DNA from: Paragordius varius
Taxonomy: Eukaryota; Animalia; Nematomorpha
Length of the DNA: 64,000 nucleotides
Direction of reading: 5' to 3'
NCBI GenBank assembly: GCA_964247055.1
Contig: OZ176053.1
Span: 3,720,001-3,784,000, forward strand
The translations under genes were made by a program, and so were the position numbers. Under the pieces are notes generated by a model, which did not search any database, was not told the DNA's origin, and worked only from the letters and a program-made list of their open reading frames with translations. Shown here one piece after another: positions 23,782-43,240 of this stretch; positions within the stretch are counted from its first letter, which is position 1, and every line of letters starts with the position of its first letter.

Positions 23782-25337
23782 TTAACACAAATACATTATA
23801 TATAAAAAAATATTTAAATCATTGGTATATTTTTTATTTGAGTGAATGCGTATTAGCAGATTGTCATCACAAGAATTTGTCAAATTATATTTGACAGATA
23901 ACACGGCCTTTAAAGTCTCAACATTTAAATTTGATTTTTCCGATGTCCACATCTGATTTACTGTGGAAAAAACGCGCTCAGTAGCAGCGTTGGTTCCATT
24001 AATGTTATCCAATAAAAATGATCAATTTCATTAAATTGCACCGTCCAGTCTTCCAATAATCTTTACAGTTTGTATAAAACATTTTTAATGGAACAAGATA
24101 TCTTGGCGATTTATTAAGCCTTGTTTTTCTAAATTATTTATAATATTGCGATTGGTTACTGGTATAAAATTATTTTATAACCTTTCTACATTGGAATTTT
24201 AGGTTACTAACTTCATTGGCTACTTCGTTTGCCGAAGTTTTGTACTTTCTATCAATTTAATAACATTTTGAAAGAGAGAAGCTTGATTATGTAGGAACTC
24301 TAACCATATTGAAGAATCACTTTCAAAAAACTTTTCCAAAGTTGTAGGACATTTGTCCTGTGATAAAAAAATAGGATTTTAAAGTATCATTTTTTAAAAT
24401 TCCTTCGATAGCTGGCAGAAGAGCAAACCAACGAGTTTTACAATATCCAAGCATTTTTTTAATATTGAACTTCTGCATTTCCACAGAATTTTTTAAGCGT
24501 TTCAACGCGTACCGTGTATATAAAAATAGGAATATACATTAACAACTACATTTTCCACATCTAGGGGTAACAAATCAGCAGCTGTTTAAATAGCGTTGTG
24601 TGTTATAAGCGCTACACACCCAACGTCAATAATGGATTAAGATTATCTGTTAATTACTGAAAATTATTTTTTGTTTCCCTCCTTGCTTTTCCACCGAAGT
24701 TCGTATTGGTGTACCGCAATATGCGATGATTTTGTCTTTTAAAATATTTTTTCCTAGAATATTCATTATTGAAGTAAAATTATGTCTGAATTCGCACCGG
24801 GTAGAGAAATAAAACTTAAAATTTTAATTTTACTCCGGTTTCTGGACAAAATATTTTATTAACGTGGGAAATATTTTTGTTTCCTGATTTGATACATCAG
24901 AGTATGGCGATATGAAAATTTTCAGGAAATCTTTTTGTATTCAGAAAATGCATGTGGCGAAAGGACAATGCATACAATGCCTTCAGCCTTTGTACGGGCA
25001 CGAATAACATGTGAGGTACAATCCATAGATCTAATGGAATGATTGTAATTAACGCGTGAAAAGATGAAACGCCTTGGGCTAGTGCCAAATTCTTTTCTTC
25101 CTCTCCAAAAGCGGTTTTACGATAAAAATCCCTCATTTTGTGAGATGATGCCACCATATCTAAACATCTTTTATGTTTCTGTATTTCCATATGCTTTGTA
25201 ATATTATGCTTACCGCCATGTGGTAGAGTGAACCCCTAACAGAAAGTATTAACAAATGATTCATTTTTCGTTTTTTTGATAAAAGGAAATTCTTTCATTA
25301 AATCATCGTTAAATTTACAACCTCTTTTTGTACTCAT
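23782..25337 (-). pseudogene. hAT transposase pseudogene
   Basis: ATG at 25337; BED-finger remnant TFC*GFTLPHGGKHNITKHMEIQKH with an in-frame stop; LGYCKTRWFALLPAIE; C-terminal dimerisation motif NAATERVFSTVNQMWTSEKSNLNVETLKAVL; pieces lie in different frames. Confidence 0.9.
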
Positions 25338-25349
25338 ATTTTAAACTAA

Positions 25350-26425
25350 TCTATATATTTATAAAAATGGAAAATGCTGGCTTTGTGATCTGGTACCGGA
25401 AAACCGGTAGACCCATTCAAATCCAAAGTTCGAAAAAATATAATCATTAATGAATGCCCCAACAATAGCTTCGCCCTTTTTTTGAAATAGGCCCCCAGTT
25501 CGGGCCTACCCCGTGTGAAAAACGGTTTTTTTTAAAACAAGTCGACAAAATCGTGTCTTTGAGACAATTTTCTGGAGAACGTGTTGGACCATTCAATTTC
25601 AAATATGATTTTTGTTTACTTATTTTCGATTGCGCCGAACATAGTAAGCTCGCTTTTTTGATTAAGGCCCTCTTTTTACCCGCTCCCCCCGTAAAATGCA
25701 ATTTTTTTAAAAAACAAAGTCCACAAAAATAATTTTTTAAATCTATTTTTCGCCCTAGGTATGAGACCGTAAAAAAATATGGATTCCACGTATTCTCTGT
25801 TAAAAGGCAAAAATTTTAGTCAAGCGGTTCTTTGATGGTAGCTGCTGGGTAGGGAGCTACCCGCAAACTGATTCCTCATGTAACTTTGTGATCTGTTTCC
25901 GGAAAACCTGTGAACCCAATCAAATCCAAATATCGAAAAAATATAATCATTAATAAATGTCCCACAATAGCTTCGCCCTTTTTTTGAAATAGGCCCCCAG
26001 TTCGGGCCCACCCCGTCTGAAAAACGGTTTTTCTGAAAACAGAAATCCACAAAAATCGTGTCTTTGAAGAGACAATTTTCTGGAGAAAGTATCATTCAAT
26101 TTACTTATTTTCGATTGCGCCGAACATAGTCGTCTCGCTTTTGATTTAATCCCTCTTTTCCGCTCCCTTCGTAAAATGCCATTTTTTTCAAAAAACAAAG
26201 TCCACAAAAATAATTTTTTAAATCTATTTTTCGCCCTATTAAACAATATATTAATTAGTATGAATGCTCCGTTTAAAAATTCCTATAAAATCATATCTAT
26301 TAAATAATGTTTCGAAATAATCCACATATGTGGATCATTTTATTGTCCCTTATTTCAAATAGCCCTCCCCCCCAGAAGTCTGAAGGACTTATTCTGGCTG
26401 CGTAGCAGCACGAGATTTACGCTAG
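25350..26425 (+). mobile_element. Non-autonomous Helitron
   Basis: A|TCTATATATTTATAAAAATGG 5' end; 3' hairpin GCTGC-GTA-GCAGC (26397-26409) then CTAG|T; no TSD; internal ~500-nt duplication (25381 vs 25884); same termini as 41029-42967. Confidence 0.88.
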
Positions 26426-30555: not shown

Positions 30556-32124
30556 TGACATTATATATTTTAAAAAAATCTTAAGGATGAAACTAATCAA
30601 AAATCACAACCAATAATTATTATTTTTTAGATTCAAAATATAATAAAATACTTATAAATGGCGCGCGTGTCGCCAAGGATATTAGAAAAAATTTGTAATT
30701 ATATTCTAAAATAAAATTAACATTGCATTTTAAAATAATTTTCCTGCCCCGAAAGCAATATCAACTCAAATATCAGTGTTTTGATATAATTAGCACAAAA
30801 GTGGAAACTTATTTAAATGACTATTAAAAACAAAACAGCTTAAAGTTCTTAAACTCTATTACACATTCATTTCAGAATATATATGACTCAAGATTTCTAA
30901 CTTGTAAATTTTAATTATCATTATAAAATATAAGATATAACGTGCACTTTCGTATTTAATTAGCTTTAATTTAAAATCACTTTGGAGCAAAATATACGCC
31001 AAATAAATATATGTGCGCATTAATGAATTCAATTTACAGTATATAATTATAGATTCAAAAGACCGATGTTTTTTTTAAACTTGAGTATTTTATTACAACT
31101 TATTGTTTTAAATTGCATAAAAGGAAATAGAGATGTATATTTGTAACGCATTATATGGATTACATTTGTAATTAAATAATTTATATAAGAAAAATCAGGG
31201 TTTAAAAGGTATGGTTGTCTTTAGTAAAAAATATTGTCTTTATATTTTTACGTTTTGTCCGTAGTAGATGAGTAAGAATTTTATGTCTTTGCCTTTTGGG
31301 TCTAAGGGCTTATAATATTTACACTTTTGTGGTATTCAAAAAATCACAAATTAGCTAATTTTCTTAGAAAGCCAAAGGCCTAATTTCAATCTACATCATT
31401 ATTTATATTATTTAAAATAATTCGATGTGGGTTCCGACATCTTAAATTGCGCACTATTTTTAATATATACGACATCAAAACAGGGTATTTTTAATAAAAT
31501 AGCTTTCTTTGCAAAGCAATTAAATTACAGTAAAAATTGAAATATACGGACACAACTGGAAAAATAACAGACAAATAACCCTAAAAAACAACCATATTTT
31601 CGAAACCTTGATTTTTTTAACACATGCTAACTTTTTTGGCTCGCAAATACAATGGTGATGTAAATTGGTTACATTTTCTTTTCTAAATTTCCAAGTAACC
31701 ATATAGTTTATGTAGCAAATATCTAGCTTAGTATGGTTGCCTTTTAGAAAAAAATATTTTATTTATATTTTCACGTTTAGTCCGTATAATTAATTTCTGT
31801 TAATAATTATCGTTCTATTAATTTTCTATTTAATTTTCGATCATTATATTACAGATTTTCAACTGTTGTTACAAAACATAATCAATCCGTCATTTACCAT
31901 TACAATAATATCATCCTTATCTTATGTTTCTTAACAAAATAGAGTGCTTCTAAGTTAATAAATTGATTTCTATGATATCCCTATGTAGCTATACTCAAAA
32001 TCTAGGGTAACCTAGTGTTGATATTCGGTTTATTTTCAAATTTTCAGTTTAATTTTCATAAATGTCAATTAAATTTAATTTAAATTCGTATAACCGACTG
32101 CATTTGACCAAAATTGCAAAGTTG

Positions 32125-32188
32125 CATATATATATTTATATATATATATATATGTATATTATATAATATATATATATATATATATATG
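32125..32188. repeat. (TA)n-rich microsatellite; others at ~22700, ~38755, ~43453, ~55068
   Basis: Directly visible TA runs. Confidence 0.9.
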
Positions 32189-32194
32189 CGAAAT

Positions 32195-32298
32195 CGATAT
32201 GTGAAAACCCCAAGTCAAATAGTTGGGTCGTACTGATGAGTGCTAACAAGCACGAAACTAGTGTGCGATTACTATTGAAGAAAGGGTTTCACATATCG
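32195..32298 (+). ncRNA. Type I minimal hammerhead ribozyme with extended helix I
   Basis: CTGATGA (32233-39), stem II GTGCT-AACA-AGCAC, GAAA (32254-57), palindromic ACTAGT stem III, helix I GGTCGTA/TGCGATT extended by AATAGT/ACTATT and CGATATGTGAAAACCC/GGGTTTCACATATCG; cleavage position 32263 is G. Confidence 0.85.
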
Positions 32299-33394
32299 TT
32301 TATAATTTCTGTTAAAAATTATCGTTCTATTAATTTTATATTTAATTTTTGATTATCATTATATTACGGATTTTACAACTCTTATTTTTAATGTATAAGC
32401 CCAATTTATTTTTTGAATTTTATGGTATATTGAACTATTGTACGAACGGTATATTAACATATTACCTTTTGAACGATTACACTTTGGGGTTTTTTACATC
32501 TCAGAGATAAATGTTATAAATAGTTTATTAATAATATTTCATACTATTTTACGAACATATATTTCAATAACTAAATTTAATTTTTAAATAATCAGCAAAA
32601 TATTAGCATTTCAGCCTATCACTGTTATAACTTAAAACCTAGGATCATATTTTGGAATATTGGAACAGGACAGCAAACAAGCTAATAACAGAAAAATTTA
32701 AATTAGAATGACATAAAACATAATAACAAAAAGACTAATAATATCTGTGTAAAAAAGACAACCATAATTTTTGACTCTTCGAAAAAATTAAAAGAGTAAT
32801 TAATTTCTAATTAAAAAGGACCGTATTTAACGTGATTTTCTGACTCATTCTTCATGTTTGCGTTAAAAAAAGTAGGAAATTCTATCAGTTGAAAACATGA
32901 TTGCTTTTTGAAGAAAAATATGTCTACAGCACAAATCACTTATCAACTACTATATTTTACCCAAACACTCACTTGATAAGGTGTTCAGAAAAGAAGACAA
33001 ATAGCGTTTTATTTTATTATATTATTTTGATATATCTTATATTTATGATTTTAATTTCTAATCACATTTAACGCCAATATTTGGATTTGTAGTTCTATTA
33101 AAATGCGAAATTCCTCCAAATCTATTTTTTAGGCTTTGTTTGTAAATATTTAATTTTTATTGTATTTAAATATATTACGAAAGGTTATAATAGTGAGGGG
33201 GTGCATAATAATAGGGAGTCATTGTTAATGAACGTTCTAAAAAACTTAAATGAGCATTCAAATTTATGTAAAGTTTATGTTTTCCATGTTTTGAAGCAGG
33301 GATGTTTAACAAAATGGGTCGCAGGCCGCCTTTCAAATATAAATATAAACATTTATAAATAATATATTAAATTTCAATAAACATTTTAATGTAT

Positions 33395-33690
33395 AATGAG
33401 TTATTTAAGCCCGAAAACACATAATTTAGTTTTTGGTTAAATTTAAATTGTTGAAGGGTGTATATGAATTGTTCCTAGGTGAATTTGTTTGAATAGTAAA
33501 TGGTATACTTACAATTTGCAATCTGAGTTCATCAAAAAATTTTCATATCTAATCCTTATTCTACAACTTAAATCAATGATATAAAATAAAAAAATCAATT
33601 TAAAAATTATCATATCTTTTAGAAAAAAATTATTATTTTTTATTACGTTTTGTCCGTATAATTTAAATTTTTACTGTATAAATTACTTAT
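33395..33690. mobile_element. Family A MITE half copy
   Basis: gagttatttaagcccgaaaacacataattt, inverted tandem units, AAATGGTA ending at 33505, then the ttacgttttgtccgtataattt arm. Confidence 0.55.
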
Positions 33691-40911: not shown

Positions 40912-43240
40912 CAAGGGTGTCCAACACACGACGGTCCTCCAAATTGCAGTCGGAAAAAATTTCAAGAAAACTAAATTAATATAAAATTTTATAATTTAAG
41001 AGAATAACTTTTTAAATTTATAGATATACTAGCGTAAATCGTGTTGCTACGCAGTCCTAGGAAGTCCTTCGGACTTCTGGGGGGGATAGGGGGGCTATTT
41101 GAAAAAGGGACAATAAAATGATCCATATATGTGGATTATTTCAAAACATTATTTAATAGCTATGATCTCATAGGATTTTCAAAACGGTGCATTCATACTA
41201 ATATATTGTTTTCTGGTAAAAGGCCCCAAATTGACGGCTAAGGGAAAAAACGTAAAATTCACCTTTTTATGGGAAATATTTAATGCTTTATTGGACTCGT
41301 ATGGCTTCTTAATTTTTTTGAAAATTAGCTTTAAAACGGCATTTTGTGTGGCGTCTCAGTTTTAAACCAGTAGACCCCTACCCATAGGCCTATATAGAAA
41401 AAGCACTAAGTTATATTTTTTGCCTTTATAGGGAAAATATTTGGTATCATCTTTGAGACCATCGACTCATGGATTATTCGAAAAAATACCTCAACACTAA
41501 ATAATCGTTATATGATGTATTTTTAGGGCCTAAAGGCCCTAAATTAACGGCTAATAAAAAAGGCCTGATTTTTACCTAGTTACGGGTAATATTTCTAACT
41601 TTAAATGAGCTCATTTTAAATAGTTCCACCGCAATTTCTATATAGTGGTAAAGTTTTGAGCGGGTACTTCCCCAGAGGCAGGTATAAAAAAGCGTCGGGC
41701 AAAATTTTTGTCTTTATATGGGGAATATATGGAATTATAATGTCCATATGTTCCTATTCTTGGAAATATTGCTTCAAAACCAAAAAATTGTTCTATGGCG
41801 GCGAATTTTTCAGGGCGTAAAACTTTTCTTAGTGACTGATTGAAGTAACCCCCTATACTAAAATATTATTTTATTAAGGGGTAATAATATTTTATGCCCT
41901 TATTGAACTCATATAGTCTCATAAGTTTTCTGAAATTTGGATAGGCATCTGTATCGATATAGTGATGCATTTTTACGCGGGTAGCCCCTCACCCTGAGCC
42001 TATTTAACCGTTTAAAAAATCCGCTCGACTTAAATTTTTGCCTTTTTACGGGTAATATTTCAGGCCCTAATAAAACTTATATGGCATGTTTCTGAAAATA
42101 AATCCTAAACAACCCAATTTTGAAATGGTGGCGCAGTTTTAGGCGGTAGCTCCCTGGCCAATATAAAAAAGACGTTCGATAATATTTTTACCTTTATATG
42201 GGAATACCTGGAATCATCATTCATTCCATATGCTGTTAATAGTTTGTGGAAGAATAGCTTCAAAACTAATTAAGGCGTAAGGGGCCCATTTAACCTAATT
42301 TAAAAAAACCAGTCGACTTAAATTTTTGACCTTTTACGGGTAATATTTTAAGCAAGGATTGAACTCATATGGCCTGATAAGTTTTCTAAAATTTAGCCCC
42401 AAAGGCAGGCTATTTATATGACGGGTCAGTTTTTAGCGGGTATCTCCTTACCCAGCAGCTATCATCAAAGGAACGCTTGACTAAAATTTTTGTCTTTTAA
42501 CAGGGAATACCTGACCTGGAATCCTTATTGAATTTTTACGGTCTCATACTTTAGGCGAAAAATAGTTTCAAAAAATTATTTTTGTGGTTAATTTTTTTGA
42601 AAAAAAGTGGCATTTTACGTGGGGAGAGGGTAAAAAGAGGGCCTAAATTAAAAATGCGAGCCGACTATGTTCGGCGCAATCGATAATAAGTAAAAAAAAT
42701 CATATTTGAAATCGAATGGTCCAACACGTTTTCGAGAAAATTGTGTTAAAGACTCGATTTTGGCGGACTTATGTTTTCAAAAAAAACCCGTTTTTGACAC
42801 GGAGTGGGCCCGAACTGGGGGCCTAATTAAAAAAAAGGGCGAAGCTATTGTCGGGGCATTCATTACTGATTATATTTTTTCGATATTTGGATTTGAATGG
42901 GCCTACCGGTTTTCCGGAAACAGATCGCAAAGTCACCACTTTCCATTTTTATAAATATATATATAGATATCATTTACTACATATACTTTATCATTCTCAA
43001 CAATAATTTCTAGAAAATATTTCAGCATGTTCGATAATTGGAAAATGCTATTTTGAGGCCTTTTAATATTTAGACATACTACATATTACTCTAAATTAGA
43101 GATTGTAAAATACTTTGAGCTCTTTAAGGTAAAAATTATTGTTTATTCAAAACAATACCTAAATATAAATATATTCATCTCCGTTTGTTATGTTCTTTCA
43201 ATGCGCCCCGCCGATGTTTTAGAATATTTGTGTTAGACAC
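40912..43240. mobile_element. hAT MITE split by a Helitron insertion
   Basis: Left end CAAGGGTGTCCAACAC; right end ttcaatgcgccccgc...ATTTGTGTTAGACAC matches the 22878 and 47810 family; terminal bases of the right TIR are lost. Confidence 0.6.
41029..42967 (-). mobile_element. Non-autonomous Helitron with internal ~290-nt tandem array
   Basis: Minus-strand A|TCTATATATATATTTATAAAAATGG 5' end and gcgtagcaacacgatttacgCTAG|T 3' end; termini match 25350-26425; about five diverged internal units (markers near 41224, 41537, 41999, 42284). Confidence 0.88.

Follow-up and report, generated by a model that had tools for sequence, protein, structure and literature searches.

A hammerhead ribozyme in Paragordius varius, very probably part of an old copy of a non-coding retrozyme family of the Penelope type

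The hammerhead motif

The window, by which we mean the whole stretch of 64,000 nucleotides from Paragordius varius that was analysed, contains one occurrence of the hammerhead core pattern, against 0.01 expected by chance in 64 kb. The motif is located at the apex of a long hairpin. The surrounding stretch is AT-rich and filled with repeats; from 29.6 to 37.7 kb of the window, all ORFs are shorter than 70 aa. Ten window ORFs searched against Pfam yielded no more than two weak matches, a hAT remnant and DUF3522. The elements of the hairpin are as follows.

32195–32298 (+): long hairpin (104 nt) with a type I hammerhead at its apex, the stem being an extended helix I
32227–32232 (+): 5' strand of proximal helix I, GUCGUA, paired with 32264–32269 (pairs 19–24/57–62 of alignment A1)
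32233–32239 (+): catalytic core CUGAUGA (positions 3–9), located by pattern search
32240–32253 (+): helix II hairpin, GUGCU / loop AACA / AGCAC, the G10.1–C11.1 pair included
32254–32257 (+): core GAAA
32257–32262 (+): minimal helix III, the palindrome ACUAGU, with two pairs around a 2-nt loop
32263 (+): cleavage-site nucleotide 17, a G (triplet GUG)
32264–32269 (+): 3' strand of proximal helix I, UGCGAU

The core conserved in type I hammerheads (Rfam clan CL00010), C3 U4 G5 A6 N7 G8 A9 and G12 A13 A14, is complete in CUGAUGA and GAAA. Three helices surround the core, which is open at helix I, and the G10.1–C11.1 and A15.1–U16.1 positions are both paired. Beyond the 6 bp of proximal helix I lie an asymmetric internal loop and a long distal helix closed by 32195/32298. 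The strand from 32195 to 32298 folds with −40.3 kcal/mol (z = −6.3 against 200 shuffles). All the parts of the hammerhead listed in the initial annotation (CUGAUGA, the 5-bp stem II, GAAA, the ACUAGU stem III and the extended helix I) are in place, as is the G at the cleavage site. The cleavage triplet of hammerhead ribozymes is N-U-H, with G the sole base barred at site 17. The window copy, with GUG, departs from this rule, whereas the family to which it belongs (family 1, described below) conforms to it; G at 32263 is an exception in a family with C in 92 of the 100 listed exact-core copies. Whether or not other family members are active, the window copy is therefore expected to lack catalytic activity.

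At gathering scores, the Rfam scan of the window gave no match; a permissive scan gave Hammerhead_HH9 with 21.3 bits (E 0.023, cut-off 52). The genome-wide search with Hammerhead_1 that had been proposed as a check did find matches, to this model and to HH9, but all of them lie under the gathering cut-off. The best come from a second hammerhead family (HH9 38.4 of 52 bits; Hammerhead_1 33.2 of 34 bits). The scores stay under the cut-off because helix III is minimal. An architecture with a very short palindromic helix III has been described (PMC4209133). The min-HHR of the pLTRs of Penelope-like elements (PLEs) has a 7–8-bp helix II and a 4–5-bp helix I (PMC4209133); judged by its predicted helices, the window ribozyme is the canonical metazoan type I form and not the min-HHR typical of Penelope pLTRs.

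Extent and age of the window copy

The hairpin is one part of a longer copy of family 1, which was delimited with the reference unit of the family.

31791–32386 (+): whole family 1 copy of 1.17 units, 5'-truncated and solo, located by BLAST of the reference unit
31791–31868 (+): tail segment, first occurrence (left direct repeat), unit positions 39–116
32124–32189 (no strand): internal (TA)n microsatellite, expanded relative to the reference unit, in which the corresponding TA run is short
32303–32386 (+): tail segment, second occurrence (right direct repeat), ending at unit position 116 and so in the 'short' 3'-end class

The copy aligns with unit positions 39 to 454/455 (31791–32262) and then with positions 1–116 (32264–32386), and coverage by other genomic copies drops sharply near 32386. 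The two occurrences of the tail segment are identical at 67 of 78 aligned positions. Compared without gaps as direct repeats over 57 nt, 31791–31847 and 32303–32359 are 91% identical with a spacing of 512 nt, and the match runs on to about 31859/32374. The locus was initially described as a 512-nt unit bounded by these direct repeats. Repeats and spacing are real, but the repeats do not bound a unit. The ~75-nt repeats exist because the window copy exceeds one unit, and they represent the overlap of a 1.17-unit copy and are not LTR-like. The spacing is 512 nt instead of ~450 nt because of the internal (TA)n expansion.

The body of the window copy is ~87% identical to the reference unit; its hairpin is ~95–96% identical to that of the family, and by this measure the ribozyme appears to be the best-conserved part of the copy. 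The window copy lacks an inverted arm, and its flanks share no word of at least 8 nt that could represent a target duplication; left of 31522, beyond the neighbouring MITE, no family 1 remnant was found. Cleavage and propagation are not to be expected of the window copy, given its G at site 17 and a body ~12% diverged from the family majority. Its sequence marks it as an old, mutated and presumably inactivated solo member of a recently active family. The copy is predicted to be dead, and nothing ties it to host gene function.

A MITE-like repeat of ~270 bp with inverted termini (31522–31790) abuts the left end of the window copy, and the repeat is also present at 31220–31263 and 33615–33658. 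It has 963 first-look matches genome-wide (~70% identity). The extra short repeats around the window copy are due to this abutting repeat.

Family 1 across the genome

The genome comprises 110.6 Mb in 44 contigs. As family reference, a natural unit was used (L059:1181–1635, 455 nt from cleavage site to cleavage site) and not a consensus. The 114-nt hairpin has at least 357 first-look genomic copies, and those that were scored are 92–96% identical. The exact 31-nt core, with the base at site 17 left free, occurs 104 times in the genome and 0 times for the reversed control. Among the 100 listed exact-core copies, site 17 is C in 92, U in 6 and G in 2, the window copy being one of the last two. 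The family is thus characterised by GUC, from which the window copy departs by mutation. Intact CTGATGAG..CGAAAC cores number 217 genome-wide, compared with 1 for the control, and most of them come from family 1.

The family 1 unit measures 445–455 nt with a GC content of ~0.25, and no open frame of 110 codons or more is present in family 1 elements. The whole unit folds with −84.8 kcal/mol (z = −4.2). Units are arranged in arrays of two to three with a tandem spacing of 444–455 nt (for example, the cores at C4:11695910, 11696354 and 11696799), and the search for tandem copies that had been suggested at the outset was thus productive. Other full-length copies show 94–100% column identity among themselves. 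As most copies are this much alike and have intact target duplications, the family is not a relic and has been active recently; the window copy is older and diverged. The initial annotation had seen here the remnant of a non-coding hammerhead retroelement. A dispersed, non-coding hammerhead family with Penelope-style insertions is indeed present, but only the window copy, and not the family, is a remnant.

Covariation with a second hammerhead family

A second hammerhead family with an unrelated body is present at loci L031–L056 (for example, G000:C4:786563–786634 and C1:3529103–3529175). Its ribozyme architecture is identical to that of family 1, and it also forms head-to-head pairs, 300–500 nt apart; by contrast, every helix sequence differs (palindrome ACGCGU, helix II GUCC/GGAC). 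In a structure alignment of the two families, 98.8% of the cells are paired, compared with 16–48% when the partners are slid. Ten of the 20 base pairs are changed on both sides, which is effectively one contrast between two families. These compensatory changes indicate that the fold has been kept and not the sequence. The original reading had depended on the existence of further copies that keep the core with covarying stems; hundreds of core-bearing copies were found in addition to the covariation.

Architecture of the insertions

Thirty distinct family 1 insertions were surveyed. The 5' truncation points vary from copy to copy, and many copies are longer than one unit. Most insertions are composites in which two arms face each other via their 5' ends; among the 100 listed cores, the close inverted pairs are head-to-head, minus then plus, in 17 of 17 cases. 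In 12 loci, a whole composite is enclosed by target duplications of 12–18 bp (for example, L058 and L023 with 18 bp, L021 with 16 bp, and L057 and L007 with 15 bp). Outer ends are of two classes, one at unit positions ~115–123 and the other at ~149–158, and about 14 of 20 composites have one end of each.

PLE insertions are 5'-truncated and form partial tandems, which give rise to pseudo-LTRs; next to them lies an inverted copy that is likewise 5'-truncated, only one end bears a tail of 30–40 bp, and the target duplications vary in length (PMC8557442). Family 1 displays this Penelope-type architecture, with partial tandems, an inverted 5'-truncated arm, a one-sided tail and a variable duplication. 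Going by the positions of the ends, the ~35-nt asymmetry in family 1 is the one-sided 'tail' of PLEs (PMC8557442).

One head-to-head composite (L008:870–1689, G000:C4:5136971–5137790) is located inside an older, diverged Penelope ORF. Its target duplication measures 13 bp (ATATTATGGATAT); codons 700–705 of the ORF are found on both sides.

Units within an insertion are 95.5% alike, compared with 93.3% between insertions. Rolling-circle copying of one RNA circle is not clearly recognisable from these values, and unit likeness was dropped as an indicator, the difference being too weak and variable.

Penelope-like elements of the genome

A scan for GIY-YIG revealed long open frames that likewise occur in head-to-head pairs. 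Penelope candidates number 349 at first look and fall into at least four lineages. An intact ORF of 788 aa (L073:5349–7712, G000:C1:4914348–4916711) encodes an RT with a C-terminal GIY-YIG and resembles protein clusters with RVT_1, GIY-YIG and HTH_animal. The youngest lineage has a 2.7-kb unit (L073:5190–7880, with relatives in L074–L076). Its copies show 95–100% aa identity and some are uninterrupted, which points to recent activity. The other lineages, with open frames of 650–890 aa, are ~65%, 40% and 31% identical to the youngest; members of such lineages are located at C5:11238034–11240154, C1:6261593–6263533, C7:2026537–2028615 and C10:2825758–2827611. Copies of the youngest lineage have inverted arms and 9–12-bp target duplications, and its composites end 27–37 nt and 64–78 nt past the unit junction, which is the same ~35-nt asymmetry as in family 1. 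Intact Penelope-like ORFs with the same insertion architecture thus coexist with family 1, and the machinery for family 1 insertions is present and apparently functional.

Family 1 elements have no telomerase-like RT or GIY-YIG ORF of their own; such ORFs are located elsewhere in the genome. It had been proposed to look for Penelope RT/GIY-YIG ORFs that carry the hammerhead. Intact ORFs were found, but the hammerhead is absent from the one lineage examined. In four 10-kb loci of this youngest lineage, cmscan gave no hammerhead at E up to 1, and a relaxed CUGANGA..GAAA search of both strands of its 2.7-kb unit gave no core. BLAST of the family 1 unit against 16 Penelope/GIY-YIG loci gave no match except an unrelated family 1 fragment in L070. 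Family 1 showed no similarity to the pLTR or 3' end of an autonomous element in the one lineage compared. Canonical PLEs with a C-terminal endonuclease have been reported to carry hammerheads universally, which makes the youngest lineage unusual. The apparent absence of a hammerhead in the youngest autonomous lineage could help to decide whether the ribozyme serves or parasitises the retroelement.

Identity of the element

In all likelihood, the window contains one old solo copy of a ~450-nt non-coding retroelement family that is a non-LTR retrozyme, that is, a non-autonomous element of the Penelope type. Family 1 is a new member of the already described retrozyme or Penelope-associated class.

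Mobilisation by a LINE RT, as for a pol III-transcribed, SINE-like element of the Schistosoma Sm-alpha kind, would account for a dispersed family that is short and non-coding and has a hammerhead of the canonical type I form. The genome does contain LINE-type RT ORFs, and RVT_1 matches in L045 adjoin a hammerhead of the second family. However, family 1 ends without an A-rich tail, which argues against a SINE mobilised by a LINE, and its 3' ends map to two internal sites separated by ~35 nt. Insertions typically have head-to-head arms and partial tandems, and the duplications vary from 12 to 18 bp. Ends, arms and duplications all fit the Penelope hallmarks and the genome's own Penelope copies, and we consider a LINE-driven origin improbable.

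Still less probable is a fold-back or MITE-type DNA transposon, with the arms serving as terminal inverted repeats and an incidental hammerhead. Composites with long inverted arms and flanking duplications resemble such elements, and genuine MITEs are abundant in the genome, one of them abutting the window copy at 31522–31790. Against this, the arm lengths, internal junctions and duplication lengths differ with each insertion and the outer ends are unequal; a cut-and-paste element would keep both its ends and its duplication length fixed. Solo and tandem forms are common. The core is intact in ~160 copies, and in a second, unrelated family compensatory changes preserve its helices. A ribozyme recruited by the host to process a host transcript at the window locus is the least credible explanation, as the window copy has the forbidden G at its cleavage site, is a single diverged copy among hundreds with nothing to set it apart, and is embedded in AT-rich DNA full of repeats whose ORFs all fall short of 70 aa from 29.6 to 37.7 kb.

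Comparison with known systems

Metazoan non-LTR retrozymes are repeats of 150–450 bp with no LTR, PBS or PPT, a low GC content and target duplications of more than 4 bp (Cervera & de la Pena 2020, PMC7229834). Family 1 resembles them in having a type I hammerhead in a short, AT-rich, non-coding repeat that occurs both in tandem and dispersed (PMC7229834), target duplications of more than 4 bp, coexistence with PLEs and no LTR, its terminal repeats being the overlap of longer-than-unit copies. The 445–455-nt unit is at the upper end of the 150–450 bp range. Family 1 differs in occurring in short arrays of one to three units and mostly as head-to-head composites, and not in long tandem arrays. 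Metazoan non-LTR retrozymes are defined by unit-length linear and circular RNAs, which are predicted for family 1.

With the hammerheads of PLE pLTRs, family 1 shares a palindromic, very short helix III, which implies a dimer (Cervera & de la Pena 2014, PMC4209133), and motif pairs on opposite strands at distances of 100–700 bp (PMC4209133; Craig et al. 2021, PMC8557442). Family 1 and PLEs also have in common partial tandems, an inverted copy with 5' truncation, the one-sided 30–40-bp tail and variable target duplications (PMC8557442). Unlike PLEs, family 1 has no RT/GIY-YIG ORF. Its helix I of 6 bp with an internal loop and helix II of 4–5 bp differ from those of the PLE min-HHR, and, in contrast to PLE-borne hammerheads, the one autonomous lineage examined has neither a hammerhead nor similarity to family 1. 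Newt satellite 2 and Schistosoma Sm-alpha also combine a canonical metazoan type I hammerhead and an unstable helix III with short genomic repeats; family 1 differs from the former in not forming a long satellite array and from the latter in having no SINE-like A-rich tail.

Proposed life cycle

From systems of matching architecture and biology (PMC4209133, PMC7229834, bioRxiv 10.64898/2026.07.22.740005), we infer self-cleavage, dimer action, circular RNA and a mobilising RT for family 1. Tandem copies would be transcribed, and the type I hammerhead would cut after GUC, probably as a dimer. Helix III, with two pairs and a palindromic sequence, is too short for a stable monomer, and for this reason dimer action appears probable. 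A thermodynamic prediction gave a gain of only ~2 kcal/mol for the dimer, and the minimum-energy fold favours an alternative pairing; such predictions are uninformative for a ribozyme that depends on its tertiary fold. Unit-length RNAs would be set free by this cleavage, and a host ligase may close them into circles. The unit RNA would then be copied into nicked target DNA by a Penelope-like RT / GIY-YIG endonuclease whose gene lies elsewhere in the genome. The predicted outcome is insertions that are 5'-truncated, longer than a unit and often head-to-head, with 12–18-bp target duplications.

With family 1, a further animal genome is known in which hammerhead mini-retroelements display the full set of structural hallmarks of Penelope-type integration. 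The evidence is exceptionally clean, with intact target duplications, a one-sided tail and head-to-head arms, and supports the current view of animal retrozymes as non-autonomous passengers of PLEs. The idea that hammerhead elements are parasites of PLEs has been raised before (PMC8557442). It is possible, although we hold it rather doubtful, that ribozyme and RT live in separate elements here, with hammerheads confined to ~450-nt non-coding elements that borrow the integration machinery of PLEs, that hammerhead elements are parasites of PLEs and not a part of them, and that sense intronic copies, of which the G-mutated window copy might be one, could be selected to lose cleavage.

Further occurrences and neighbouring repeats

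Family 1 is also found in public runs labelled as three other organisms, in 236, 20 and 44 contigs of X5, X6 and X8, respectively. These contigs show 85–99% identity (aligned to L059:1219–1673), their summed depth peaks over the ribozyme, and site 17 is mostly C with a minority of T. The occurrences could reflect close relatives, mixed samples or transfer. Among the public runs searched for family 1, no RNA run had the sequence, and the possible RNA run X18 gave no contig, which is no proof of absence.

Elsewhere in the window, a remnant of a hAT-type transposase (weak Dimer_Tnp_hAT) is located at 23782–25190 on the minus strand, and a similar frame is present in locus L023. Repeated open frames at 25447–26246 (−) and 42706–42954 (+) have the common motif …NGPTR.PENC.KDTI…GPNWGPISKKG… and are probably another repeat family; the copy at 42706–42954 had no match in Pfam.

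Partial GIY-YIG-like matches are located 7–9 kb from four contig ends (C7:7794–7928, C28:8476–8598, C3:14411901–14412020 and C4:14188756–14188875). Those in C7 and C28, the two compared, are ~32% identical to the Penelope endonuclease. The positions suggest a common subtelomeric element. A family 1 tail fragment lies ~900 nt upstream of the C7 copy.
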